Part shown: in pieces, positions 3,001 to 42,764 of the stretch
Layout: each line of letters begins with the position of its first letter
Position numbering within the stretch: the first letter of the stretch is position 1
Assembly (NCBI GenBank): GCA_965202585.1
Contig: OZ241831.1
Span: 17,112,001 to 17,176,000, forward strand
Length of the DNA stretch: 64,000 nt
DNA from: Thalia democratica
Taxonomy: Eukaryota
Direction: 5' to 3'
Translations under genes and position numbers: made by a program
The notes under the pieces: model-generated
Seen by the model: only the letters and a program-made list of their open reading frames with translations
Databases searched by the model: none
Told to the model about the DNA's origin: nothing

Positions 3001-6000
3001 AGTTTAATTAATTTTAGATACCTAATACTAATATAACAGCAAACCTTGTTTTCCATATCTAAAGAATTGGAAATTATAGTTACAAATAAAAACTTTAGAA
3101 CTTTGAGTTATAATTTGAGTAAATTAAATAAATTAACAGTCATAGACTGGTTTTATACAACAACCATATTATTTATGATACTTATCTGATTTGTATATCG
3201 TAAAAGAAAAATTAGGAAGTTGTTTAGGGAAAGATTCTTTTTGATAACTTATGATAATTTATTAGCTTATATTGAAGCAACATATTTCCATATAAAATGT
3301 AAAAATTTTACTAAAATAATTTTTCATTCCATTAAATCATAAATTTTCTTTACGAGAGAACAAAATAAATTTTCAATACTTCTTTTATACACTCTAATCT
3401 GATAACAGGTTTTGTAATAAATCAAAGGTCACGAGTAGTCTCATACTACTGAGTATTGTTCTAGTTGTAAACAAGTTAATTTCCATGTTTTGCTTTCAGC
3501 AACATGCAAATGTGCATATAAGTTCACAAAAAACTAAGAAAGCACATGAAAAACAACAACAATGAAAGTTTGTGTAACCAAACAAAAGATTATAGGTATA
3601 AAGCCGTGTTTGTTTACGACAAATGAATTCACAGTAGTCCATAAACCGATTACCAAATCTTTTAATACTAATCTTAGTGGAAGAAAAAATCGAAAACTCT
3701 TTAAATTTGCATCGTAAATTTTTGATTCTTGTAAAAAGCAATGCGTTAAAGATATATTTGTTAAGTGCTTTTATATAAGCTCCTAATACTTATGAGATAG
3801 AGTTTTAGCAATTAATTATGATGAATATTGACAGTTGCCGTTCAACAGCATCGTTCAATTCATTTCTAACTTGACTGACTTAAATTAAAAACGAGAGAAA
3901 TGAAAACGAGAGTGAACAAAAAAGATAAAACTCGCTTCTTTCACAACTTGAATAATACCTATCTATTAGGTTTTTTCCGATATAGAATTTTTTTCAGATG
4001 CAGCAGTTAATTTTAATGAGCTTTGTTTATTTAGATACTACTAATGTTTTTTTTTATTTTTCATGATAGTATTTCTATAATCTTTAACAAATCTTTTTGA
4101 AGTATACATAATTTAAAGAATAATATAATTATAAAATGGTAATATAAGTAGCTCAGTTACCAAATTATACGCAAGAGTTGTTATGACTGTACAAGCTTAT
4201 ATATTTGGTAAGGCTTTATTCTTTATATCGTTTTCAAATGATTTTTAGATGAAAAATAATATTATTTTCATTAAAGTAGTGATAAATTTAAACTTATAAA
4301 TTTTGTAACTGTGTTTTAAAAATAAATTTAAATCTTTTATTTTGTAAAGTCCTTTAAATTTATTTTTAATCATAAAAATAGAAAAGTATTATATAAAACA
4401 TTGAACTAAGAAACATAGCTCTTTATTGTTTAAAAACAAAATTTTATTGCACCAATCAAAACTTTGAAAACATTAGTTATAGTTCGTGTTTGTGTTGATT
4501 GAAAAAAAAGTTTAAAGTTCTTAAAAGTTGAAAGATTGAAAATGTGTAAACATTAAACGTAAAGCTGTTTAGAAATTTCAAAACGCTTTTCTTTTTTCCT
4601 CTCTCAATTTTAATTTAAAACAATTTAACACAAACGACGCTTAATAATTCATTGCAGATCTAAGCTTCAACGTAAAACCGAGTCAAGATTTTTTTTCTCA
4701 AATAAAAAACACCTCGCAAACTAGAATTTTTTATTGACAAAGTGCAGATATAATGCTTCGGGTTATTTTTTGTGGCAGCGGCGTGGTTAAATGTCAGATA
4801 TTTTAATTAGTGTCTAATCTAATTAAACTGCTCGTTTGTCAGCCGACCGCTGGTTCGAATAACAGAGTTTCAGCTGAAAAATAGGTGATCGTCAAACTGG
4901 TATTACCTTTGTATACAGATTTTAGAATTGTTTTTTAATTTTCGGCTCGTGCTGCGTATTCTAATCAATTTTATTGTGATGAGTTTTACATGAAAAAAAA
5001 TGACTAAAAGAACACCTTTTTTAGGTCAGTGCATTAAAACAACGCGGCTTGACGAGCGTGTAATCTCTGAACAAATTGGTGATTTCCGTAATTTTTAACG
5101 TATAAAAACATAGAAGACAAGCTTCAGATCTTAAATGGTCGTATGAGATGCGCGCAATTACTTGAACGTGACCGCGTTGCGAGGCGCTTCGAGGAATTTT
5201 TTCATGTCATCGCAGCCCGATAACATCATCGTACGATGCGGTGCGCACGTGAAACGGCCACGACGTCCCAACAACAATTCCAACGTTGAAAATTCGATCA
5301 GCTCCTCGAAACTTCCCTCCAACGGATGGCTCCGGGCGCTGTTTTGTCTCCACACGATCTTAATGAGTTGCCAGTTAGGAATGAGGCTGTTTGCGCTTAC
5401 GAACCTAGTTAATTGAATTTTTCGAATGCTCTGTTACCTAACTTCACATGATTTATAAGTAAAACTGTTAAACAGACATTTGCTGTTTTATTTTTCTCTA
5501 AAATACTATGAATAAGTGTTTTATTGATCAACTGTGGGTGGAATATAAGAGTAAGTGTTTGTAGTATTTTAGTTTAAAAAATCGATTCTAATCGTAAAAA
5601 CGATTTTAGAAAATTTTATTCTTAATTTAATTATATGAAAGGAGAGAATTTTTTACATTAGTCTGAAAAAAGTTATAAACTTTTTGAAACGTGGAAAACT
5701 AGCTTGACTTAAAGATTACTTATTAAAGTAAAAAAAAAAATTAAGTCATATTTTAAACTAAAAGCTGTTTAAGTCATCGATCACTGAGCTAAAAGTAAAC
5801 AAAACTATTTGCTTAATTTATTTATTTCTAAATTTAAATAAATTTGTTTTAATTCAAAATAGTAAATTTTGTTAAAGCTGTGTATAAACATGATATTTTT
5901 GAACCGAGTTTTATGTATGGATTAAACACAAGCGTGTAACCGAGCCTTCCATTAAGTTTGCATGCAGCCAAAAAATCAATCTTTGTGCAAAGGTTTCTAT

Positions 6001-6344
6001 CAGATCTGCATTAAAAATTCATAAACTTTTCTGTTGTAATCTTTATTTGCTAACCTTTCATGTCTTAACAAGCGTTGAAAGTCGGAAAAAATAACAGCTT
6101 ATATATAAACTTGACATTTTATTATTCTAATACTAGGAAGTAAAGTATGTTTTAACTGTTTACTGCTGTACAATTAAGAAAGTAATATAACAGTTTTATA
6201 TATACATATACCTTATACTTAATATAATATAATTAAACAGAGTAAATTTAACAAAAATATCACAAAAATCTTTGTAATCTACAACTGACGTAGTTTCAAA
6301 GCTGCTAGCCGATCAAAAAATCCAAAGATCTAAAAAGCCTCGAC

Positions 6345-9300
6345 ATGTCTGAGACTTGTCAAGAAAACCAGGTCAAAGCTACAATGAAAGAAAAAGTTGC
6401 TGGTCCAAAAGAAAAGCAAGAGTGTTCGTCCTGCGCTGTGACGTCACAAATGGACGACAACATGAAACGCATGATGAGTTTCGTTGAGCCTCTCGGGCAC
6501 TCGCAGGTCGTCGACCGCCAGTCACTCGCCAGTCTGCCTGTTGGATTTGTAAAGGTCAGTTTTACATGATGACCGTTTGTTTTAATACTTGTTTAAATAT
6601 TTAAAGCGTTTTGTGTAGATATAAAAAGTTTGATTTCCGTCTCAAAAAACTAAAAAAATCTTTAAAACTTAACAGACCTTATATTTAACCGGTTTTAGTT
6701 GAATAAATTTCCATAATGTTTATAGTTCAACAATACTACTTTAAAAGTAGTAACAATTATTTTTCTCAACTTTGTTGTAAGTTATAACTTTTTAAAGTCT
6801 CCATTACTTTTTATTGTAAAAGTAAACTTTAGTTTTAACTGTGCTCAAGGGCTATAAAATTTTACAACGTTAACTCCCTTTCTGTATACTTGATGCAATA
6901 TAGAAAATTTAAAAGTTTAAACAACTTTTCCCACCAGCTAAAACAAAAATAAGTTCAAAACTAAAGTTCTTAGTTTTATTATCAAAAGTTAAACGCTTAA
7001 TTTGACAACTGTTTTATTTTTGATAGTAATTTATTTTGTGTTTATGTTGTTACGTTTAATATCTTAAAAAAGGCTGGGAGTGTTATAAATAGATGTATAT
7101 TTATATATTTATTTATAGATATATTAATGGTTAGAAATGAAAATTGTTGCTATGTTTACAATGTATGCGCGTTTGTTTTCAAAATGATTAACAAGTTACA
7201 ATTGATATTTTAGGGTTAATTAAATTCTAAAGGAGTTGGTTTGCTAAGTATCATAGCTAAACAAACATAAAGAGCTTTCGTAATGCAAATACGTTACTAA
7301 TTGTTAAGGATAAAGTAATTAGTTACCAAAAAACTTTTTTTAGTACAGTTTGAACTGTTCCTTTTTATACAAAAATAACTGAAAAAGTGTAAAAAATTAC
7401 TTATGTTAGTTTGCGAAGTACAAATAAAACGATTTTTTATAGTTTATGTGTAAAAAATTAGCAGCAGTATAGTGTTTTGTAATATAAAAACATGAAGATA
7501 CGTACACAGTTAATTAAATTTTTATGTAAAACTTCATAACTCTTGTGCCATACACTTACTTTTGAGCAGCTTAACAACATGAAGCTTTATATTAAATAAG
7601 CAAAACAGTGGTTATTTTTGACTTCGGCAAGCGTGTTAAATGTTGCTTCTCTGACTATTAATCTATGGTAGCCTGTTTCTCTTTCTCTATGTTCATTGTG
7701 CCGTGTTCGCATGTATTGATTTGTTCTTTTTGTGAGAAGCATCAGAGCTTTTTTGAGACGTGCTTCACTTTTTTTTTAGTTATAATTTCAAATAAATGAT
7801 GACGTGCAGTGTTTTAAGTTGAACTAGCAGCGTGTGAAAAAGCTTAATGTGTTGCAAATGCTATTTCTGTTATGTTTAATAAAGCTAAAGAAGATAAGGT
7901 TAAGTTTTGACATTTTTTACATCGTTTATTAGTATTTTTATACTAGTATTATTATTTTAATAAGATTTATTTAAGCACTGACGAGGTCTTTGACCGAAAC
8001 ATAGTTTTTAAATAAATTCTTTAAAGAATAAATTCAATATTTATCCTCCAGTAGTTGAGGTATCTTTATTTGTTTTCTTAAAACCAAAACATATAATAGT
8101 ATTTTCATATAATAAATTAAACTAAGTTAAAACTAATTGAGAAAGTGTTACTAATTAAGTTTTGTTAAACGTGTTTATGCTTTTTTTATTGTACTTTATG
8201 CAATTACTGTATCATAAGGGTTTATAATTTAGCATACGTTCAAAAGCTGAAGTAAATTTTTGTTTTATTAAACAAAAATTTAGAACATTTAAAGTTGTAG
8301 GTTTTGTTTTTTATTATACTTTTTTATAATGAATATTATTTAGACATATAAACGACAACTTCAAACATGATAAGTAAGTTGTTTAGTAAGTTACATACCT
8401 TACAAAGTATAAATAAAAAATTACAAACAGCTTGCAATTACCGACGATTCAAAAATGTTGAAAGTTCGTCTAGTCGACTTCATGAAGACACTAACTTCAA
8501 AACCTAGTAACAATTCCACTGGCAAGATTTCAAGCAGCTCCAAGACACGTTAGTTATTAAATTGTGTCGACCTTTTCTTAACGCCTTTATGTTTAATTTT
8601 AGCACATCGCAATTTTTTTGTTTATCTTTTTAGGAGATTGAGAGTTTTTAATTGAAATAAATTTAAATAGATATTTAAACTTTCAGTAGATAACATATTT
8701 AAATAGTCCTAAATTGTGTCAGGGGTACTTATTTTTACTGTAAAGATACTTGTTTTAAACGCTTAAAACGATAAAATATTTCGACAGAGGTGTCAATAAA
8801 AGGTTACCTGGCTATGAGTAACCTGGTAACCGAAAGTAAGGTAGTAGCTACCAGTACTAGCAACCAAGATTCTACGGGCAAGAGCAATGTACTTCTGTTT
8901 GACAAGCGAGAAATAGCTGCAAAGATAGCTAAAGGCTTAGACCAAGGATGCTCAAACGCGAAGCAACTTTTCAACGCCGAGCAAATACTTCAAGTTAGTT
9001 GGGTAACTCTGAAAGTTTTGATTGGTTAAATTACTATTAACGCTGCCCCGCCTATATTGCATTTCATAAGATTCAAACACGTAACAAAATAGAAATACTT
9101 TTGGTTGCAATAAAAGCTTCATGTGTATTATTTTTAGACGGTGTCTTCACGTTACTGCTTCGAGCTATTTTGTACAATTAAACTTGCTTGTATTATGTAT
9201 TCTTAATTCTTGGAAGTTTAATTAATTTCGAAAATTTTCAATGCTTAAATTTTATCTTACGTAAATAGGTTTTCGCTCAGTATGTTACTTTTAAAACCCA

Positions 9301-12300
9301 GACAGTGCCAAATAAAACGAACTTTTTTTTAATTTTATGACATACTAAAAAAACAAAAGAAGGTTTTTAAAAGTAACAAAGTTTTTAAGAAAAAAATATG
9401 TAGAAAGTGTCTACATCTAGTTAAAAATTGTTCAAAAAAATGCAACTAGATTATAATTAAACAATATTAGCTATTAAATTTCATTTTCAAGAAAAAACTA
9501 AAAAAACAAACAAATAAATCTTAAACCGCATCCGTCTGATGAGCAAAGGTTATCAGTGATTTCGATAGAAACTTGACCTTCAAACCGCGAAATTTTAGTG
9601 TCGTGCTTGTTTTTTTCAAAAAGTCACCAAGAATCGAATTCTAAAATCCAGTTGAAAAAAAAAACTCAGCTAGTTTTGCTTTTAATTCTCACTTTACTTT
9701 TCTCTTAAATTTAACTCGACGATGGTTTCGCACAACCCTCTCCTTTTGTATTTTGCAGCTAATTCTAAATCAATTTTAGTCTCGTGTAATGTGACGTCAT
9801 AGCACGCGAGAACCTTCTGCTCAGCAAGTTTGCTTGTTTTCTGCATTTCAATTGGCCTTCGCGTTTCGCCCCCCGCCAACTTTTGATTGTTTTTTTCTGC
9901 GACTTTGTTTGATGAATTGTTCTAGCTGCTAAAAATCTTGCTCAAAACGCATCTCTCGACCCTTAAGGCTGATGTATTTACATCAGCTGCATAGTTTGTA
10001 CGTAAACTGTCGCTAGTTTTATGTTTGAACTGCATCAAGATCATTAGCGTGCTGTTGAGTTCGACATAGTTACCACATTTTTTTATCACAGGTTTGCGTG
10101 TTCGTCTACCCAGCTCCCTACCGGCTAAAGACGTTTCTCGGAACGGTTCATCTGGCCATTGCCGAGATGCGAAGATCGTGCAACAGCAGCAGCGTGTCGC
10201 TGTCATCCTATTACAAGGTAAATTTGACCTTAAAATTTATATTGCGCTCATTTTAAACGCTGCTGAAATCGCTAAATGCCAACGCTTTGTTTGTTTTCGA
10301 TGTTTTTCGTAGCATCATGCAGTGTTTACGTGGTGCTACGATGGTAGTGTTTTTTTTTACTTTTATATTTGTGTTTTGAGAAAATTGTTTTCGAAAATAG
10401 AGTCGAAACTTTGCAAATGTTTCAAGGTAAGTCGAGTTTGCAATTTTTAAGGCTATGATGGTTTTACCATTGTAGCAATGAACCGCGAAATGTCTTCCGT
10501 GACGCACTTTAGCTTCTGTTTGAAACAAAAACAAGTTTGTTTAGAACTGAAAATCATTTATAATTCATAGAAACAAAAACAAACTTCCAATTCTTAACCT
10601 GTTTATATCTAAAACTGATATTTTTCCAGATATTTCCTACGTCGTCGTTCGTGGCCGGATGCCCAGTGATCGGAGCGACGCACCACTGCGTCAACAGGTG
10701 TCGTCACGGCAACAGCAGGAACCCCCTCGACGAGATGTGCGAGCGGGCGAGAGCCAACCAGGTGGTCGCGTTTAAAGTCAACAACAGCGGCGGGCAGAAG
10801 AAGCTGAAAATATCAAAACTGGCCGGTGCTTCAGCTTCCATACCGGAGGAAGCGCGACCCAGGTGCAACACGAGCAGCGAGAAGCCGACCAACTTCCGCC
10901 CCAACCCGAAGCAAATCACCAAGTCGCATTCGCTTCGGGCACTCGTGTCTGCACTGACCCACCGCAAGCGTCACGCCTTGGCAAAGTCTAAAGCGTACCA
11001 AACTCCCGCGAGCTCTCCGCCCCGAACGCAGACGACCAAGCTGGAGTCGGAAGTGTCGCTGGATAACGGGTACGGCAGCAGCAGCGGCGACAGCTGTAGC
11101 AGGACGTCGGAATCGAAGTTCAGCGACCGGCAGCAGCATTCCTTCAACGAGTCGATCCGAGGGCCGCTGTGTTACCGCCAAAGCGAACCTTCCTTCACGG
11201 CTTCCGTGACGACGACCAACTCCAGTTGCTTGGTGGCGCAGACTTCGATCGACAGCACGAGGTCATACGCCGACTCCACGACTACGAACTCAGGGGAAAC
11301 GAGCGAAAGGACCTCTTCGGCGAGCCAGTGCATATGCGGAACGGAGTACTGTTCCACGATCGACCGCAGCACCATGTCGGCTTCGACCGGAGCGATCAGC
11401 GCCAACGAAACCACTCCAAGGCCGCGACGAAAAGTCAACACGGAAATCACGGCAAGCGCGAAGGTGAAGTCGATGCAGAACATCGTGAGCTCGATGAAAA
11501 ACATCGTGTACAGCGTGCGAGTGCGCGCCAAGATAAACAGCAGGACGAGAGAAGCGCGCATGGCGAAGAGAAAGAACATTTTTCCCACCAGACCGACCAC
11601 TTCCGTGCCTCCCAACTTGCGCAGCTTCTCGCTCGGCCCTCTCATAGACGGCAGCGAGGACGGGTTCGACGTCAAAGACAACGTCTTCGAGATTCTCAAC
11701 TCGGCGAGTAAAATTCGTTCCGGTGGAGTCGTCAAGAAAAATTCAGAGAGCGGAAGCAGCTTTTCTTCTCCGCTCACCTCCACGGAGAGGGACGTGTCTG
11801 AGGCGCCCGCTTCCTCCAAGACCTCTCCTCCGCAGAGCTTCGACGAGGGAAAAGGTTCCTCTGAAGACGGAATCACGTTTTCTCTTACAGAACAAAGCGA
11901 CTCGAAGAAAACAGCAAGTTGGAATTGCGAGGACTGTATGCTCGCCAGCTTGGCTGATAAATCTGAGCTAAAAGCGACAACGAGTCTAAAAAAAAATGAG
12001 CAGAACTTGAGTCAGCGAAGCAAACTCGTGAGACAAAACTGCTTCCGAAGTTCGGACGACATAAGAAAAGAAAAAAGCAAAGCTGCGAGCAAAGACGCGA
12101 AAGTTTTAAAACTCCGCCAGAAGCACAAACTGACCAAGCTGAAACCGGTGGTCGACGATGACATTGCTCCGTACATCGAAGACGGAATTCCGCCGCGAAA
12201 ATCGCTGGAAGTTCAAACGACGACGGAGGACGAGTCAGAGGACTTCCACAGCTGCGCCGGCGGAGACTTGTACGTTTCAGACATGATTTCTCTCTCATCT

Positions 12301-12354
12301 TCGTTTCACAGCCTGAACTGCTTTGTCAGCGGCGAGGATGTTTGCGTGCGATAA
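6345..12354 (+). CDS. Divergent RIM (RIMS/unc-10 family) C2B-domain protein with a long Ser/Thr-rich C-terminal tail, about 794 aa from the ATG at 6345
   Basis: Exons 6345-6554, 8431-8548, 8788-8993, 10092-10217, 10630-12354; all introns GT-AG with consistent phases (0,1,0,0). The spliced protein reads FVEPLGHSQVVDRQSLASLPVGFVKLAI..LTSKP..IKGYL..LLFD..ILQVCVF..KTFLG..YYKIFPTSS, matching RIM C2B as recalled (FLDGLGPAQLVGRQTLATPPMGDVHIAI..LTPKP..IKVYL..LLFD..VLQVIVW..KCFMG..WYKLFPTSS). The true 5' end is uncertain: an in-frame acceptor at 6307-6308 allows an upstream exon. Confidence 0.8.
7964..8018 (+). ncRNA. Minimal type I hammerhead ribozyme motif (Penelope-type) within an intron of the RIM-like gene
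   Basis: gatttatttaag-ca-CTGACGA-ggtc-ttt-gacc-GAAAC-ata-GTT-tttaaataaatt. Core intact, 4-bp stem II, 2-bp stem III, 12-bp stem I with a 2-nt register defect next to the core; AATAAA motifs in and just after the 3' strand. Confidence 0.7.
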
Positions 12355-15300
12355 CGCTTTGCATGAAACTTTCTGCAGTTGAAATATACTCTTTGCTGGT
12401 GATTGAAATACACTTTTTTCGCTTGTTAGCCAACTAAGCTTGTTAAACTTTTCGTTAGCTCTAATTTTTACTTAGTTTTCGCCACTATTAAAAATTTATA
12501 GGTTAAGTAAACATTTTAAATCAGCTGTCTCCGAGTGCTTAAACTCACTTAACATTAACCTAATTTTTTACACTACATTTAAGCACATCGAAACAGGATA
12601 TTTTACTAGAAATTGTTTTTTGCTACAAATCATAACGCTTTGACGCTCTTTTTAGAATTATTTGTTCAGTAGGGGTATATTTTTATGTTTTTATTTTTTG
12701 CCTCAATTATTTTTTAGGTTTATGTAATTATAAAAAAAAATATGTGCTTTGACAATAAAGCTTTAAAACCTTTTTTTAATAAACTAAAAGTCACAGTTGT
12801 TTTTATAACTTTTTAAACTTTTTATTAGATTTATTTTTTCTTAAGATTTGATTTTTTAGCTTCATTCGAGTTTTCAAAATATATTTTAGATATTTTTTGT
12901 CACCTTTTAACAAGTATTGTGTAATAAAATAATTATTTAGTTGATTGTTAGTAGTTTTGAATAGTACGTAAGCTTTATTGTGAACATTCAAAAATCGCTT
13001 TAAGTTTTTAATAAACCGTGTTAACAATTTATACACTTTCTCATTGTAATACTTAAGATTAAAGAAATATTTTTCTAAGCTAAGATTAGAAAACTAAGAG
13101 TTGCATTAAGAGCGAAATTTCGGAAAGTACACGCAATTGAGAAAATATGAAAACTTTCCGATCAGCCGATGTGCAATCAATACCACCTATGATACGCTTT
13201 TAGCTTGTTTGATCATTAATAAAAAAGACTCGTGCATGTTTTCAGATCAGCTTTGACTGCCTCGTACTTGTTTAACTTCTCAATTACGAGTCTTCGTATT
13301 TGTTGTTACAAGAGCAATTTTCAATTCTTTCAGCGGTGTACTTCACATCAGCGAAAAACCAATAATATTGAGCAGTTATGCAACTTTTTTCTCGAAAAAT
13401 ATTCTCTATGAGCTTTTTTTACAGCAACAAAATTGTTCGCTTAATGGTGTAAGCTTATGAAAGTATGTTTTTTAAACGTACCTAAATTATCTTTATTTTT
13501 GTTTCAAGCATGAATCATTTCTAAAACTAAACCGAAAGTTTATTTGACGTTGGATCATATTTTAAAATATTTATACAAAAAACTAGTTTTAACTACAATG
13601 GAATACTAATGTTTTTTAAGACTAATAGCTATATTTAGAGGTATAACTATTATTCAACTGTTAAGTTGATTATCACTTGTTCTACTAAAGCTTTAATCAA
13701 AAATTTTTAGATTTTATTAAAGCACCAGAATTTTTTTTTATAGAAGTACGTATTATTCGTTTTAAAAATGATTTTTTTCATACTTTTGCAAACAAAAAAT
13801 GTTTAAAAACTACAACATAAACCTTGAAAATAAGTTAAACTATAAGTTACTGTTTTTTATATTGTTTACATCAACTCCAGTTTTTTACTTTAAAAAAATC
13901 TTAACATTATTCAAACTCTAATTCGTGTTAAATTTGTTTTTTTAAATCAAAACAGACTTAAATTTGGTAACAGTAGTTTTTTTTCTTGTGTTGAAAGACT
14001 ATATACTTCTAAAAACTTAATTATATAAACATTATTTTAGTCCTTTATTTTAGTCGGTTAATAAATTATGTAAATACTATTCAACTTTTGCTTAACTTTT
14101 GCCTAAGCTATATCAAATTATTGAAAAAACACAATAACTAAAAAACAAACATACGTTTCAAACATCGTTAAAAAGAATCTCAGCGCAACACCCGTATTAA
14201 GCATTTACTGCATGCAGCCGAATCTGCATGACATGCTAATTAATTATTTAGGAGGCATCCAAAGCGGAAAGGCCAACATAAGCAGCATAAAAGCATCAAA
14301 ACACGCCACGTTCACAGGTACAAGCTGCATGTAGGGGGAAAGAAGCAGGCAGTTAAAAATTCGGTTGGCGCGCCAAGCTCGGATTGCATTTCGCCTTACC
14401 TCAGTTTGAAAATGCAAGCGATTTCGGACATCCACGCATATAATGTGCGCGTTATACAAACGATGAACAATTATTTCAATTTGCCACCGACTGGCTCTTG
14501 GCCTTTCGACTTTCCTATGTGCGGCGCTGCACTTTGTTTGGCAAAGAAACTTTTTGCCGACTTGATATTCTACCGGCGCTTTAACGTATGAAAGAGTTTG
14601 ATTCAAATTGGAGAAAATGAAAGTTGTCAGATTTTTTTTATCGATGATTTATAGCTGCCTAAAGTTTAACGTCTAACTAACCAATATTTGCTAGAGTAGT
14701 GCAATTTTTTATGAAAAAAAAACAATGAAGGACTAAAGTTCAAGATTTTAAAATTAATAATGTAAACAAATTACTTTTATGAAAAACAATTAAACTACTT
14801 ATAATAACAAATTTTTACTTGGTTGATAGTTTAATAATTTACCGTTTATATAATGACAAATGTTAAAAATAATCAGTTTTTAAACTACTTGTTTGTGTAA
14901 AATAATTAAGTCATGATTTTTGATATTGCCACCTAATGAAAAACTTGAAATATGTTCTTCTACTATACTCGACATTTAGTAATTATTTTTTCAATTTACT
15001 TAAACAATTGTAGAAAAATATTTCATAGTCAACATGTAGAACTAACTCATAGATTAGATCATGTTGTAACATGCGCATTACCATTATTTTATTCAAAACT
15101 TAATCATTGCTGAGGGTAAACTTATCCAGCTTAGACAAATATTATTGGTGTGTCATACACGTTCATTATTTTAAAACAGTCTGTACACATGCTGTAAAAA
15201 GTAAGCAAAGATGACCTATTTAATTTTAATTAGTAAGGAGTGGTGAATTATATAATGAAACTTCCTTTGATTTTTATGTGGTTATAGTTCTAAGCATTTA

Positions 15301-22170: not shown

Positions 22171-22234
22171 TTAAACTCTAAATTTTAACACGAGATTCTG
22201 AAGTTTTCAATAAAATCAAAACGCGAATGTGAGA

Positions 22235-24154
22235 ATGGAAAACAAAAAGTACATCAGCTCCAAGCAGCTCTACCTGGGCGACATCGTGGACAGCGTCAGG
22301 ATGATGCACCTGCAGCAGCAGAAGCCGCACGTTCCAAACAGACCGCGCCTCGCCCTTACCTACAATCCCGGCTACGAGGGCTTCGTCGGCAAATCGGGCG
22401 AGGCGAAGAACTACCTGCGGCCCAACAGAAAGGTGTGGGACAAGAGCGGGCTGCCCGCTGCTGGCAGAGTTGAAATTAGAGCGAACGGCAGCGTGAAAAA
22501 GTGCTTCGCCAAGGACAACAAGGAAATCAATGAAAAGTTGCAGCCCGGCTACATGGTAGACCGCAGCTCGTGCCCAGAGTCAAGGAGAGGCGTCAGGCAT
22601 GGGAAACTGCGCGACTGCTACCGAAACAACTGCGACGTGATTGTTCCTAATGTTAAAACTAGGTGGCAAACCGAAAGGGAAAACTTCCTTTCAAAAGTGA
22701 ACGGCTGTCCCTTCAACAAGCGACCTGTTGGAAAGTCTGTAATGAAGGACGAAATAAAGGGGTGGGAAAAACCTCGCGCTGGCAAAGCGTTTGAGAGCCC
22801 GGGAGACGGGTACGGAATCGTGCAGCCGAACATCCCGGCGTTGCAAGTCGAAGAAAACGGAAGGATCAATCACGACCAGTACGTCTTCACCCACAACAGC
22901 TACGAGCCGGGTGAGAAGAAGAACCGCAACTACGAGTGGAACGGCGAGAACAAGTTCACCAAGACGATGGGCCGGGAAACTAACGCCGGGATGGACAGCC
23001 ACCACGTGAAGAAAATCCTGGAGTGGGAGCACGACGCGCCCGCCAACCCCACCAACAAGGTCGTGTCGCTCGCCTACCAAAACCGTCAGGACTTGTTCAA
23101 GCACAAGCTGGGAAAAGTTCGCGACCCGAACGTCCAGTTGCGACTGCAAACGCTCAACCCGGACCACAGGTTTGGCCTGAAGGAAGCGCCGCAGGGCCAC
23201 GGCGCATTCGAGTGCATGTACGGTCGCAACCCCAGCGACACTTTGCACGGGGAAGAAAAGCTGCAGGGGCTGGCCGCGAAGGCGAGGTGGCACATCAAGC
23301 GGGCCAACCATTACAACTTTGAGCGAGTTGAAGACGCGTTTGATAACTTCGATCGTGACCGAAAAGGCTACCTAACCGCCGACGACGTCCAGAAAGCGTG
23401 CTGGAGATTCGACATACCGTTGGACGGAAAAGTCTTGCGAGAATTAATGAAGATCTGCTGGCTCGAGTATGGTCAGGATCCTTCGGAATTCGACATCAAC
23501 ACTGCGACCTTGGACGTTGAAAAGTTCATGAGAAAGTTGACCATTCACGACTTCCACCAGGACCACTGCAATTGGGAGACTTTCGGCGCGGTCGCCAACG
23601 ACTACCTGGTGAAGATGGGCGACTACAACAGGCTGATGCTCTGCCAGAAGGAGCTGGTGCGCTGCCCGAACCCGACCCAGCACCTGACGACCAGCTCCGA
23701 AGTCGGCGCCGGCTACCCGCAGTGGAAGGAAAGCTTTATGTGGCACAGCCACGGGGTGCCGTCGAAGCGCACGGACTTGGCCGAGCCGAGGTACGTGTCG
23801 GTGTCGGACGGCCTCGACTACGGCGACAGGAACATCTACGAGATAATGCGACCGTCGGTGTTCCATCGGTGCGGTGTGTACGAGCGCGACCTGATGGAGC
23901 TGAGGGGGAAGGCGGTGTGCAAGCGCCTCATGTGCCGCTTCGGCCCCAAAATCGCCGAGGCGACCTTTGAAAAGATGTGGCCGCTGGCGGTGAAAATGAG
24001 CAACCCGGAAAGGGGCGGAGCTGGGGAGAAAGCTTCCGTTCAGGCGTGTCAGATGATTCTGAGAAATTTGGCCAGAAAAGTGCCGCTTGACAACCCTGCT
24101 GATCTGAGAGTGACGAAAAATGTTGCTGAAAAACGCAGCGAGCTTGTAATATAA
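22235..24154 (+). CDS. EFHB: EF-hand domain-containing family member B (CFAP21, ciliary microtubule inner protein), single exon
   Basis: Uninterrupted GC-rich ORF, first ATG at 22235 (the ORF track starts at GTG 22229). EF-hand FDRDRKGYLTADDV; C-terminal HGVPSKRTDLAEPRYVSVSDGLDYGD..RPSVFHRCGVYERD matches the EFHB C-terminus (YGVPTIRSDIPAPRIRRISDRTNYGEE..YPTIFARKGVFERD). AATAAA at 24187-24192. Confidence 0.92.
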   Translation: MENKKYISSKQLYLGDIVDSVRMMHLQQQKPHVPNRPRLALTYNPGYEGFVGKSGEAKNYLRPNRKVWDKSGLPAAGRVEIRANGSVKKCFAKDNKEINEKLQPGYMVDRSSCPESRRGVRHGKLRDCYRNNCDVIVPNVKTRWQTERENFLSKVNGCPFNKRPVGKSVMKDEIKGWEKPRAGKAFESPGDGYGIVQPNIPALQVEENGRINHDQYVFTHNSYEPGEKKNRNYEWNGENKFTKTMGRETNAGMDSHHVKKILEWEHDAPANPTNKVVSLAYQNRQDLFKHKLGKVRDPNVQLRLQTLNPDHRFGLKEAPQGHGAFECMYGRNPSDTLHGEEKLQGLAAKARWHIKRANHYNFERVEDAFDNFDRDRKGYLTADDVQKACWRFDIPLDGKVLRELMKICWLEYGQDPSEFDINTATLDVEKFMRKLTIHDFHQDHCNWETFGAVANDYLVKMGDYNRLMLCQKELVRCPNPTQHLTTSSEVGAGYPQWKESFMWHSHGVPSKRTDLAEPRYVSVSDGLDYGDRNIYEIMRPSVFHRCGVYERDLMELRGKAVCKRLMCRFGPKIAEATFEKMWPLAVKMSNPERGGAGEKASVQACQMILRNLARKVPLDNPADLRVTKNVAEKRSELVI

Positions 24155-35209: not shown

Positions 35210-37840
35210 TTAGTCTTTATCAATTTCCACTTTATTAAGAGAAAATAATTCACTTTCATTCAAAACAGTTTTACTAGAAGTTTTAGCATCCACTTTAGAA
35301 ACGTTTTCTTCAACTGAAACTTCTTGTTGTGTCTGCATTGTTGGTAAGTTTGCTGGGTTAGAAGTATCTTCTTCAGATAGTTGATTAACTTTTTCGTTTA
35401 TGATTAGGTTGTTTTCAGATACATACATAACATCTTTTTCAAGTAATGCATTCAGCTGAAATAAAGATTGGTCTTCTTTTGTTTGATCAGTAGTTTTTAA
35501 TTCTTTACTATTATTTTCAAAGTTTTTTTCAATACTGCTTTCTTGGATAATATTTTCTTTCTTATTAGTATCAGAATCAATCTTAACATCATTTTTATCA
35601 ACTTTATTTGTCTGAATTTCTGTGGTTAAAGGCTCAAGATTAGATGGATGATCATTAGTTTGACTTATAATTTTTAAAGATACAGCATCAACATTTTTAT
35701 TAATAGAATCAACTATATTATTTCTTATTTCTTTAGATTCATTTTCATCAGGCATAGTTGTGTTTTTACTATCACTTTGGTTTATTTTGTTTTTATTGGT
35801 GCTCATTGAATCACATTTTGACTGATCACTGCTGGCCTCATTTAAAACAGTAGAAGAAAGATTATCTGTTTTCTGTTCTTCACCATTTAAACTTTTTGAT
35901 TCATTTAAACACTGGTCACTTTCTTTATCAGAATTATTACCATTTGTACTTGTTTCTAATAGATTGTCAAGTAATTTTTGAGATTCTTTATTTAAATTAT
36001 CGGAAACAAGCTCAAAGTTGTTTTCTTGTTTGCAGTCTTCATTAGTTAAAGATTTTGTTATATCATCTGTAAGTAAGCTGTTTAAATAAGAATCAGGTAT
36101 GTCACCTTTTGATGAGGCATCATTTAAAATTTCAAGATCTTCACTAAAAACCAACTGCTGTTGGACAATAGAAGAAGGTGAAATAGATTTAATTCTATCA
36201 ATAAGGCATTCAACACTAATTACTGGAAATTTTTCCACATTTGATGAGAAAGCTGATGGACCAAAAGCAACATTTAAATTATCATTTGAAAACATAACTT
36301 GTAAACAATCATTTATGTGAGGTATAGCTGTATAAATAAAAGACTTACATAAGCTGTCAAAGTTTTTCTTTTCAGTTTTACTAAAAGCAGCACTTTCAGC
36401 TGAATGGAATGTGACTAAAATATCAGCTGCTTTACTGAAAGCAGCAGATAAATTGATAAAAAGCCATTGAGCAATTGAAACAGGGCAACAAGATCTCACT
36501 TGGTTTAGCATAGATAATATTCCATTAACAAGCACACATAAAGGCTGGTGCTGGAGTAAATTTACTGGTGGAAGAGGAGTTTTAGTTGTACTACTTGGAG
36601 TTACAGATGTTGATTGGTTGTGTGATACAGATGCCATTAGAGAATGTGACATCATCAAGGATTCAAAACTATTTACTGTTGATTTGAGCTCCTCCGCAAG
36701 TATTTTTTCAGTAGTTTCAATAAAAACATTAGCTATTAGGCTCCTAAAGTCTGCTCCAACTTTGCTAAAAGACTGGCCAAAATACATGACTGGTCGTAGA
36801 ATTGAGTCCAATCTGCTTGGAATAAGAGGTAAATACTTTTTAAGTTCCTTAATAAACACAGAAACCCTGTATGTTATCCAACTTGAAAATATTGCAGAAC
36901 TTTTTGGTTTTCCATCTGCTGATTCTTCCAAATGGTATGAGTAATCAAACGGACTACTAAAAGTTGTGTCATCCATGAAGATAGCTCTATATTGAGTAAC
37001 TATACTGAACAAATTGACTCTATATACTTCTAGCAACTGGCTAAGGTAATCATGGACCTGATTTTCATCATGTGATTTTCCTTCTTTGAGAAAAGGCAAC
37101 TTACTTTCAAACCAAGAATTTCTGACCTGTAAAAATTTGAATCTTAACTCAATCTCACTGAAGCATTCAAGTCTCCGTACATATCCAATAATTTTTAGAC
37201 AAACTGGAAGCTGCAAAGAAGTTTTAAGCTGAGCTAAAAGCTGCTCAAGCATCAAAACAGTTGAGTTTTTAACATCATCTATAATACCAGCTATTACTGG
37301 TATTTCAGCTATATGTTGTTTTTTGCTCAAACGTTTTACATAAAAAACAAGCTCAAGGGCATCTTCATAGTACTGGTTTCTAACACATGTATTCATTAAT
37401 TGTGGAATTTCTAATATTTCAAGAAGCTCTGTGTTTTTCTGGAGAGTCAAAGATGTGCACCTTCTTACATTACCAATTTTACTGACCTGTTTAAGAAAGC
37501 TTTGTCCATGATCTGAAAGCTGTGGTAAGGTGCTGATCATGTTGTCAAGTTTCTCCTCAATCACACTAAAATCTTTAACTATTCCTTTAGAACAGTCTGC
37601 AGTACTAATAAAAGTTTTATAGTTGTGAAAAGCTAAATCTCTAGTCTGCTGTAACAATGAAACTTTCTTTTCTTCAAGCCTTTCTGGCTCTTTGTTTAAT
37701 GTATCAAGGTCAGAACCACAAAGGTGAGAAATATAAGGTAAGAAATAAGGGCTTTTCATTTTATCATCTGCAAGATCATCAGTAAATATTGATGCAAATA
37801 TGGCTTCATCTTCAACATTAAAACTTTTGCAACTGTCCAT
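35210..37840 (-). CDS. COG8: Conserved oligomeric Golgi complex subunit 8 (Dor1 family), single coding exon with a long acidic low-complexity C-terminal extension
   Basis: 876-aa ORF with COG8 motifs LNKEPERLEE..LAFHNYKTFI, LLEILEIPQLMNTCVRNQYYEDALEL, LPVCLKIIGYVRRL, RVNLFSIVTQYRAIF and MYFGQSFSKVGADFR. 3' acceptor ttttttacag at 37857-37858, 16 nt before the ATG. Confidence 0.95.
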   Translation of the reverse strand: MDSCKSFNVEDEAIFASIFTDDLADDKMKSPYFLPYISHLCGSDLDTLNKEPERLEEKKVSLLQQTRDLAFHNYKTFISTADCSKGIVKDFSVIEEKLDNMISTLPQLSDHGQSFLKQVSKIGNVRRCTSLTLQKNTELLEILEIPQLMNTCVRNQYYEDALELVFYVKRLSKKQHIAEIPVIAGIIDDVKNSTVLMLEQLLAQLKTSLQLPVCLKIIGYVRRLECFSEIELRFKFLQVRNSWFESKLPFLKEGKSHDENQVHDYLSQLLEVYRVNLFSIVTQYRAIFMDDTTFSSPFDYSYHLEESADGKPKSSAIFSSWITYRVSVFIKELKKYLPLIPSRLDSILRPVMYFGQSFSKVGADFRSLIANVFIETTEKILAEELKSTVNSFESLMMSHSLMASVSHNQSTSVTPSSTTKTPLPPVNLLQHQPLCVLVNGILSMLNQVRSCCPVSIAQWLFINLSAAFSKAADILVTFHSAESAAFSKTEKKNFDSLCKSFIYTAIPHINDCLQVMFSNDNLNVAFGPSAFSSNVEKFPVISVECLIDRIKSISPSSIVQQQLVFSEDLEILNDASSKGDIPDSYLNSLLTDDITKSLTNEDCKQENNFELVSDNLNKESQKLLDNLLETSTNGNNSDKESDQCLNESKSLNGEEQKTDNLSSTVLNEASSDQSKCDSMSTNKNKINQSDSKNTTMPDENESKEIRNNIVDSINKNVDAVSLKIISQTNDHPSNLEPLTTEIQTNKVDKNDVKIDSDTNKKENIIQESSIEKNFENNSKELKTTDQTKEDQSLFQLNALLEKDVMYVSENNLIINEKVNQLSEEDTSNPANLPTMQTQQEVSVEENVSKVDAKTSSKTVLNESELFSLNKVEIDKD

Positions 37841-41107: not shown

Positions 41108-41979
41108 CAGGGTTCGTGCGCGAAATTTTTTTCATTTAGCCTGACTGAGACCAATTTAGCCTGACATTTTTTCAAAGTAAAGAAAATCCCCTTTAGAAGT
41201 CATTTTAGGTATTGGGGGTCTTAATTAGTACTATTGTAGTCTCCGACTTCAACCAGTTTTAACCCGAAAATATTTTGAGCTTTAAACATATGCAAAAAGC
41301 AACTTATAGCTTAGTTACAACTCAATAAAATAAGACTAAATTGTGAAAAAGGTGATTGACCTCCCCCCTATGCCCTTATTATATCAAATTCAGTGATAAG
41401 TTTTAAAATAACTGTTATATCTAATCTAAAACTAAGGTAAAATTTTAATAATAACACTAGTCTAAACACAATTGTTCAATTTAACTAAGCACTATAAAAA
41501 CATTATAACCAGAAGATTTATAACAAAACGATGTGCATTGTCGTGTATTATTCAAATAAGTATTACAATTCAAACAAACAGCTAAGTTGTTGAACTAAAC
41601 TGTAATGTTTAAACTGTATTTTTTTATGAATTTTCATAATAATGACGTATACAATGTACTCAAAACAAAATAACGAAGATTCTTAAAAATTTTTTAGAGA
41701 TTTAACAAAAGGTTTTAAGCATTTATTTTTACAAATACTGACTGATTTTGTCTTAAAAACCTAAATCTTTATTTAGAAATAAATTCACATCTCAATTTGA
41801 TCTTAAAGAGATTTCTCTATTTTTTTTTATCAAAAATTTTGAAGCATTTGAACTGAGAAAAACTGAGACTCTCAAATTTTCAAGTAAAAAACTGATTTAG
41901 CCTGACATCTTTCAACTTTTTTCAAAAAAACTGATTTAGACTGACTTAGCCTGATTTAGCCTGACGCGCACGAACCCTG
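41108..41979. mobile_element. CAGGGTTCGTGCGCG-terminal non-autonomous DNA transposon with 6-bp TSD; contains a right-arm fragment of the TTAA foldback family (about 41180-41375)
   Basis: 15-bp TIR cagggttcgtgcgcg; TSD TTAAAT on both sides; tttagcctgac subterminal repeats. Confidence 0.85.
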
Positions 41980-42764
41980 TTAAATACCATATAAAATGAT
42001 TAAATAATCAATAAAGAATTATATACCATACAAATAAAAGAATTAACTTAGATAAGTAAAGAGCCTCTAAAAACACATGTTTCTGCACTGTTCTTTTGAC
42101 CTTATCAAAAACACCTAAGATACTACAGCATTTTTTGACTATGTTTTTTATATAAATTTTATGAAACTTAGTGTTGTTATTCTAATAACCTTCATGGAAG
42201 CATAGCGATAAGTTTAAACTATTTACATCAAGTACTTAAGTAGAGAGCAGTAAGTAAAAAGCGTATTGATTAAATTTTGTGTAGATACAACAAACTATCA
42301 AATTGATTTATTTGTATCATAAATTTTTTTTATCACAAAAAAAGCATTTAAAATAGCTTAAGCATCTTTTCAAAATCTATCAAAAACATTCTTTTTTACT
42401 TGAGATTAATTTACTACTATAAAGAGATAAAAAACTATGTACTTTCAAAAACATTGAAAAATTCTGAAAAATCTGGAAGAAACTTGAAAAATCTAGAAGA
42501 AATTTGGAAAGCATGTAAAAAATTCGCAAAAATTATTTGGCAACCCTGTATATCTATACTTTTATACATAGTTTGAATTTAGGTTTTAATACAATTAAAT
42601 ATGATTGATTATGTCTAAAAAGTGACAAAATTATAAAAATGATAAAAAACAACTGGTAGTTTAGTAAATTATGTAAGAATTAAGACTAACTTTAAAAAAA
42701 TGTATTTAGTCTATTATTCCCTTATGTTTGGTATTTTTTTAAAGTCTAATCATTAACTATTTAA

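Follow-up and report, generated by a model that had tools for sequence, protein, structure and literature searches.

A tunicate gene encoding a RIM C2B-like domain and a long C-terminal tail, and its probable origin from a RIM gene

RIM proteins are central organisers of neurotransmitter release sites, and the C2B domain is their least understood part. In RIM1, the extensions of this domain pack on its beta-sandwich and contribute to the dimer seen in the crystal. Here, we describe a five-exon gene in a 64-kb stretch of the genome of Thalia democratica (OZ241831.1:17,112,001-17,176,000, forward strand; hereafter the window, within which all coordinates are given unless another contig is named). 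It occupies positions 6345-12354 (+) and has a 794-residue product, in which a domain resembling RIM C2B is followed by a tail of 562 residues. Taking the evidence together, we consider it highly probable that this is a functional, stand-alone tunicate gene combining a RIM C2B-derived domain with the tail, and that it belongs to a tunicate-wide family that arose when the 3' part of a RIM gene was duplicated.

Caenorhabditis elegans has a single RIM gene (PMC10169678), while a second clade, termed RIM-II, is found in various invertebrates and is largely absent from chordates (PMC7456537). The gamma-RIMs are the products of duplication in the vertebrate stem (PMC7456537, PMC10169678). The CaV beta subunit is reported as a partner of their C2B domain (Uriu et al. 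2010, through PMC7456537 and PMC10169678), and in RIM3-gamma this domain binds CaV1.3 at the channel's C-terminus (PMC5462952). A dimer of RIM1 C2B has also been reported (PMC12151379); the same source, citing de Jong et al. 2018, mentions binding of phosphatidylinositol 4,5-bisphosphate (PIP2) by this domain at a highly conserved site, and lists E1198, R1201, R1239, M1293 and I1295 as the residues that touch liprin-alpha2 in the structure 8z22 (PMC12151379).

Gene structure and the C2B-like domain

An initial annotation, made from the sequence alone, had described a spliced open reading frame (ORF) with a match to RIM C2B at residues ~45-230 and a long tail encoded in one GC-rich exon. Each of these features was borne out: transcripts confirm all of the exon joins, the domain is recovered by a PDB profile, by a profile search of 5.8 billion proteins and by fold matches, and the tail has a GC content of 0.45-0.56, compared to ~0.25 in its surroundings, the window being AT-rich in general (GC 0.20-0.28) with abrupt GC-rich islands.

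Exon borders were placed from the sequence and by tblastn with the full-length orthologue P0003, followed by a check of phase; all of the exons lie on the forward strand (+). Exon 1 (6345..6554) contains the ATG and 70 codons, encodes the N-terminal extension motif FVEPLG.SQVVDRQSLA and ends in phase 0 after ..VGFVK. The first beta strands of the C2B-like domain are encoded by exon 2 (8431..8548), which ends in phase 1, and the middle of the domain by exon 3 (8788..8993), which ends in phase 0 after ..ILQ and includes the strand (I)KGYL, followed by a neutral or acidic stretch at the place of the KKKTK of RIM. Exon 4 (10092..10217) supplies the strands VCVF...KTFLGTVH...YYK and also ends in phase 0. 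Exon 5 (10630..12354) holds the end of the domain and the tail: its 12 codons up to 10665 (IFPTSSFV...) complete a C-terminal extension of RIM type, positions 10666-12351 encode the 562-residue tail, and the stop codon lies at 12352-12354. As delimited by profile, alignment and model, the domain corresponds to residues 45-232, or 6477..10665 (+) including introns; a short and variable N-terminus precedes it.

All four junctions are of the GT..AG form and are precisely spliced in contigs of a close relative, 95-97% identical to the window, that derive from four marine metatranscriptome runs on two samples from one study. Three of these contigs start at 6242, 6247 and 6252, which is 93-103 nt 5' of the ATG, with nothing joined upstream; they define a 5' untranslated region (UTR) at 6242..6344 (+) with an in-frame TAG at 6306. 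An in-frame 5' UTR stop is likewise found in each of three transcript contigs from related taxa (L001, L061 and L063), and the transcript-derived full-length proteins P0003 (749 residues), P0025 (804 residues) and P0020 (783 residues) have identical exon joins. When the window was compared with P0020 or P0025 by the Nei-Gojobori method, the ratio of non-synonymous to synonymous substitution rates (dN/dS) was 0.03-0.06 over residues 45-232 and 0.05-0.12 over the tail, so the whole reading frame is under purifying selection. The transcripts and the dN/dS values together rule out a pseudogene or chance ORF. This is a stand-alone, expressed and functional protein-coding gene, and it is present as a single copy: a search of the 802-Mb assembly with the family profile matched the window's own exons alone.

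Two other observations were made around the 5' end. In runs X1 and X2, a single contig each follows the window as far as 6258 and then continues into unrelated sequence; there is no GT at this point, and so no donor site, and the breakpoint possibly arose because the AT-rich 5' region of the relative differs from the window by haplotype or indels. Within intron 1, a short repeat at 7950-8100 reaches a summed metatranscriptome depth of up to ~477, compared to ~15 for the exons, with loose ends on both sides. Searches of Rfam gave no match at the gathering score in 5000-13000, and none at E <= 1 in 7850-8150.

The affinity of the domain was apparent from several kinds of comparison. A profile built from five family members matched RIM1 C2B (2q3x, 8z22) in the PDB at E ~1e-13 over the whole domain, the next entry being Doc2 at E 0.34, such that the best match is not to a C2 family outside RIM. 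Among 5.8 billion proteins, in a search whose reach is bounded by length and shared words, all of the domain-length matches from outside the family (E 1e-13 or better) were RIMS proteins or RIM C2B fragments, the weaker matches being short unnamed fragments. A HMMER search with residues 1-235 of P0003 against 1.84 billion representatives recovered just one protein family, a small one; the sole outside match, to a 55-residue stretch of P0006, a 3,387-residue repeat protein with SdrD/SpaA-type domains, is taken to be spurious.

Structure prediction gave a similar result. The AlphaFold2 model, based on a seven-sequence alignment, is a C2 sandwich with a predicted local distance difference test score (pLDDT) of 71.5 and a predicted template modelling (pTM) score of 0.72. 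Foldseek placed RIM1 C2B at ranks 1-4 in the PDB (TM-score by target 0.61-0.64) and the C2B domains of RIMS3, RIMS4, RIMS1, RIMS2 and unc-10 at ranks 1-13 in Swiss-Prot, where the next family, PI3K-C2alpha, has an E-value more than two orders of magnitude worse. The RIM-specific blocks GP.Q.V.R..L, K.YL, LQV.V, K.F.G and WYK.FP.SS.V are common to eight family members and to tunicate and vertebrate RIM C2B, and the N- and C-terminal extensions are the best-conserved columns in the family. Residues 45-232 are thus, as judged from profiles, alignment and model, a very diverged C2 beta-sandwich descended from RIM C2B.

Origin of the tunicate family

Cluster look-ups identified relatives in a number of other tunicates. 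Those from Clavelina lepadiformis (XP_076814990, CAK8688865), Ciona intestinalis (XP_002131811, F6YKM4) and Styela clava (XP_039260289) are all labelled 'uncharacterized', and that from C. savignyi (H2YD48), which came from the profile search of 5.8 billion proteins, 'C2 domain-containing protein'. No paper was found under the RefSeq locus names of the family, and the top-ranked papers on Ciona RIM C2B do not mention it. In a maximum likelihood tree of C2B domains, which took in invertebrate RIM C2B sequences from unnamed metagenome-contig transcripts, the family is monophyletic (100/100) with a stem of ~3 substitutions per site. Its internal order, with the Styela type opposed to Ciona, Clavelina and the thaliacean-like sequences, follows accepted tunicate relationships; hence the gene is older than the divergence between the ascidian and thaliacean-like orders sampled. 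Together with the marine metatranscriptome matches, the tree points to a pelagic, thaliacean-like tunicate as the organism of the window. A protein search with the tunicate RIM C2B P0044 returned nothing new, and no named protostome or RIM-II proteins.

The same genome also contains a separate RIM gene, for which the initial annotation had proposed to look. It was located by searching the genome with 48 residues of rat RIM1 C2B, as aligned in the PDB profile search, and lies at 17787014-17806294 (-) on contig C10 (loci L020-L022). Its PDZ exon (L022:1108-1389, -) scores 27.1 bits with Pfam PDZ, above the cut-off, its C2A exon (L021:8023-8271, -) matches Pfam C2 at E 1e-10, and these are followed by four C2B exons and a tail of ~30 residues. 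The PDZ, C2A and C2B domains were verified; a genome search with FYVE_2 (PF02318) did not locate zinc-finger (ZnF) exons of this gene. In keeping with the earlier remark that no PDZ or C2A exons were to be recognised upstream of the window gene, none of the PDZ, C2A or other upstream ORF pieces of the C10 gene matches the 64-kb window.

Given the great divergence, tblastn found no match between the window gene and the C10 RIM gene. Their three C2B introns are nevertheless identical in position and phase: the first is in phase 0 after the DIQ-equivalent, the second splits in phase 1 a codon that lies three residues ahead of the (L/I)K.YL strand, and the third is in phase 0 after LQ. The phase-0 intron at ILQ|VCV had been correctly noted from the sequence, and the same LQ|V intron is present in both C10 RIM and vertebrate RIMS genes. 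Comparison structures were taken from genomic RIM contigs recovered from metagenomes. Among these, vertebrate RIMS genes (L042, L043) share introns 2 (P[A]PY) and 3 (LQ|V), but their intron 1 interrupts a Gly codon three residues before that site, in phase 1. In the arthropod-like RIM genes (L036, L040, L047) the first position is without an intron, and the second intron lies four codons further upstream, in phase 0. The fourth intron of the window gene (YYK|IFP), just 5' of the tail exon, occurs in no RIM gene examined. The window gene thus has a RIM gene structure of the tunicate type, as would be expected from a partial duplication at the DNA level in the tunicate lineage. The two contigs carrying the vertebrate structures (Ga0065711_1064384 and Ga0065711_1036986), with RIMS3/4-like and RIMS2/4-like C2B exons and introns, are DNA of a host or animal that was assembled with a metagenome.

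These results can be set against other possible explanations. One is that the exons are the 3' end, or an internal-promoter isoform, of a canonical RIM with ZnF, PDZ and C2A exons upstream. The vertebrate RIMS2 gamma isoform does come from an internal promoter (PMC10169678), and rare longer isoforms would be compatible with the contigs. However, the initial annotation had named transcripts joined to upstream RIM exons as the mark of a canonical RIM, and the contigs instead begin close to the ATG, in-frame stops occur in the 5' UTR both here and in three related transcripts, the 64-kb window holds no match to the PDZ and C2A exons of the C10 RIM, and a PDZ-C2A-C2B RIM with its own C2B and short tail lies on another contig; this explanation is therefore largely refuted, and we regard it as scarcely credible. 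It also appears unlikely that the family descends from the RIM-II clade as a truncated and rapidly evolving relic, all three introns being those of the RIM-I-type gene of the same genome, one of them unseen in the vertebrate and arthropod-like RIMs examined, and the non-family matches in the bounded profile search all being RIMS proteins of RIM-I type. Such a relic would fit with the presence of RIM-II in Branchiostoma and Saccoglossus and its loss within chordates (Piekut et al. 2020, PMC7456537), and the very long branch of the family, with its unresolved attachment, permits an older origin.

A further proposal, that a C2B-only gene existed in the ancestor that tunicates and vertebrates share and that the family is the tunicate orthologue of RIMS3 and RIMS4, we find quite unlikely. 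It would account for the C2B-only architecture with its own promoter, for the leading position of RIMS3 and RIMS4 in the Swiss-Prot Foldseek results (24-28% identity, compared to 21-24% for RIMS1/2) and for the two of three intron positions in common with vertebrate RIMS, and a grouping of the family with vertebrates is kept by the approximately unbiased (AU) test (p 0.52). It is opposed by the statement that RIM3 and RIM4 are vertebrate-stem duplicates along with RIM1 and RIM2 (PMC7456537, citing Wang and Sudhof 2003), and by the grouping of vertebrate RIMS2-gamma and RIMS4-type sequences with each other, apart from the family. Moreover, the gamma N-terminus of ~100-130 residues (P0028, P0040, P0043) is missing from the family, whose members start 5-45 residues before the domain, and the first intron is that of tunicate RIM, in phase 0 after the DIQ-equivalent, rather than the phase 1 intron in a Gly codon of vertebrates. 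It is for these last two reasons that independence is favoured. The most likely origin of the family, as read from gene structures and alignments, would therefore be the copying, at the DNA level, of a RIM gene's 3' part in the tunicate stem, independent of the vertebrate gamma-RIMs.

A number of points weigh against this interpretation of the gene and its role. Pfam C2 (PF00168) has no match at E <= 10 in the window exons or in P0001-P0003, none at E <= 1 in P0005, P0007, P0009 or P0011, and none at E <= 0.1 in P0026; P0044 scores 70 bits with the same model. The missing match reflects sensitivity and is not evidence against homology, which is visible by family profile or structure model. The very long branch of the family joins the C2B tree at an unresolved node, and the AU p of 0.52 is obtained alike for grouping with tunicate RIM and for grouping with vertebrate RIMS. 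As the C2B comparison set includes no RIM-II, amphioxus or named RIMS3 sequences, the gene from which the family was copied and the direction of intron change can be assigned only provisionally. A homodimer prediction for the domain scored 0.00, with controls not run, and is neither for nor against self-association. The tail is apparently disordered, as judged from its composition, the absence of family or look-alike matches, and the low pLDDT of its first ~15 residues. The initial proposal of an independently derived C2B-only RIM paralogue consequently holds in part: the gene has its own transcription start and a separate RIM exists on C10, while independence is favoured only, the AU tests being undecided. 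It also needs correcting in that the gene is not a one-off, but one of a family extending across tunicate orders.

Basic strand, tail and putative role

The 22 residues that follow the K.YL strand have a net charge of -5 to 0 in all eight family members, compared to +4 to +6 in 12 RIM C2B domains, tunicate and vertebrate ones among them, where they include KKKTK..RK; the RIM of the same genome has +6. We take the KKKTK basic strand to be the PIP2-binding site of RIM C2B, an identification said to go back to de Jong et al. 2018. By alignment, then, the family has lost the polybasic strand of RIM, and with it the presumed PIP2 site. The liprin-alpha2 contact residues are also not kept in the family, and most are not kept in tunicate RIM either: equivalents of E1198, R1201 and R1239 are all missing from the RIM of the same genome, although P0044 retains that of R1201. 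RIM3 and RIM4 similarly have no Arg equivalent to RIM1 R1201, which liprin-alpha needs (PMC12151379). Loss of the liprin residues was rejected as a hallmark of the family, since tunicate RIM is also without most of them; with such losses shared by tunicate RIM and RIM3/4, only the loss of the basic strand is specific to the family.

The tail is composed of 16.7% S, 8% T, 7.8% K and 6.9% R, with a net charge of +20. It has no Pfam match and an ESM Atlas search gave no usable look-alike; the sole part modelled, the first ~15 residues, has a pLDDT of ~50. Tail length varies within the family from ~250 residues (Styela type) to ~560, and between orders only short islands recur: D.GY.SS, DNV[FY]E.L.S..K and, close to the C-terminus, an acidic [DE]-rich [FY].[ST]C. 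The suggestion of a new C-terminal module was not upheld, in that the tail is of low complexity, with few short conserved motifs and no recognisable domain. We read it as a constrained, probably disordered region with linear motifs rather than a new folded module. Directly after the domain there is a Cys/His-rich stretch, GCPV...HC.N.C, which is absent from the Styela type. In the window it falls at 10654-10707 (residues ~229-246), with GCPV, HC and C within ~16 residues, and it recurs in thaliacean-like and Ciona sequences and in part in Clavelina. It could be a metal-binding knuckle, the model being of low confidence there.

Loss of the KKKTK strand, the presumed PIP2 site, means that the domain probably no longer targets membranes. 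It would most likely serve instead to bind proteins or to self-associate by way of the conserved surface of its extensions, these being the most conserved part of the family and, in RIM1, packed on the sandwich and contributing to the dimer. Short linear motifs, regulated by phosphorylation, would be provided by the constrained, phosphorylatable tail, so that domain and tail together might constitute a gamma-RIM-like adaptor rather than a full organiser of the active zone. Such an adaptor function is putative, but is the most likely role by analogy with the gamma-RIMs. The active-zone or secretory scaffold put forward in the initial annotation would remain a hypothetical role, in a family without RIM's KKKTK strand and liprin-binding residues. 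The scenario as a whole can be put forward tentatively: tunicates may have made their own C2B-only RIM independently, lost the basic strand and the liprin residues, kept the extensions and gained a tail under selection, giving a new soluble adaptor.

The family represents a second, probably independent C2B-only lineage in the sister group of vertebrates, kept across tunicate orders and invisible to Pfam. It also amounts to a natural experiment, as the domain has lost the presumed PIP2 strand and its liprin-contact residues while the extensions are under strong constraint, which hints at other roles of C2B. If this is correct, C2B-only RIMs would be a recurrent solution in chordates, and the conserved surface would mark a 'third' role of RIM C2B that is so far ill-defined, such as binding to the calcium-channel beta subunit or another partner. 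With Ciona being genetically tractable, its gene, LOC100177502, is suited to dissecting the functions of RIM C2B beyond lipid and liprin binding. Four 'uncharacterized' RefSeq and UniProt entries can now be annotated as RIM C2B-like.

Other features of the window include a GC-rich single ORF of 641 residues at 22229-24154 (+), which has EF-hand matches, including one to the EFHB C-terminal EF-hand (PF25325, E 6e-11), and resembles an EFHB-like gene without introns or with a single coding exon. An uninterrupted ORF of 876 residues at 35210-37840 (-) matches Dor1/COG8 (PF04124, E 2e-93) and continues into a long extension rich in Asn, Ser and Lys; this is probably a COG8 gene, intronless in its coding part. 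Lastly, a shared, coding-like interspersed repeat is found both at 41122-41990 and at ~17,784,700-17,786,200 of contig C10, just downstream of the RIM gene, with up to 81-85% amino acid identity over 20-35 residues.

Comparison with described RIM proteins

The architecture of the window gene had been called unfamiliar, and with the C2B domain first and a tail of ~560 residues it is unlike that of alpha-, beta- and gamma-RIMs. Canonical alpha- and beta-RIMs consist of upstream domains and a C-terminal C2B with a short tail, neither of which is found here. The RIM-II clade, a RIM lineage of non-vertebrate deuterostomes that could conceivably be the source of a divergent C2B, is, as compared from its published description (PMC7456537), of ZnF-PDZ-C2A-C2B form and ~1,100 residues long, unlike the C2B-only window gene (PMC7456537). 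The RIM on C10 has the same three introns and extension motifs as the window gene. By contrast, it possesses PDZ and C2A domains, a polybasic strand (net +6) and a ~30-residue tail, all of which the window gene is without, and the window gene has the extra YYK|IFP intron.

The gamma-RIMs (RIMS3, RIMS4 and RIMS2-gamma) resemble the family in having a single RIM C2B, without ZnF, PDZ or C2A, expressed from its own start. They are the closest structural matches of the window domain, and the extension motifs GP.Q.V.R... and WYK.FP.SS are common to both; the Arg equivalent to R1201 is missing in RIM3/4 (PMC12151379) as it is in the family. They differ in having ~100-130 conserved residues before C2B and ~25 after it, whereas family members have the domain close to the N-terminus and a tail of 250-560 residues after it, and by eye the gamma N-terminus is unlike the residues that precede the domain in the family. 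Gamma-RIMs also keep the KKKTK strand and match Pfam C2, neither of which holds for the family, and the position of the first intron differs. The window gene thus displays every sign of RIM C2B descent for which it was examined, and is distinct from both the canonical RIMs and the gamma-RIMs.

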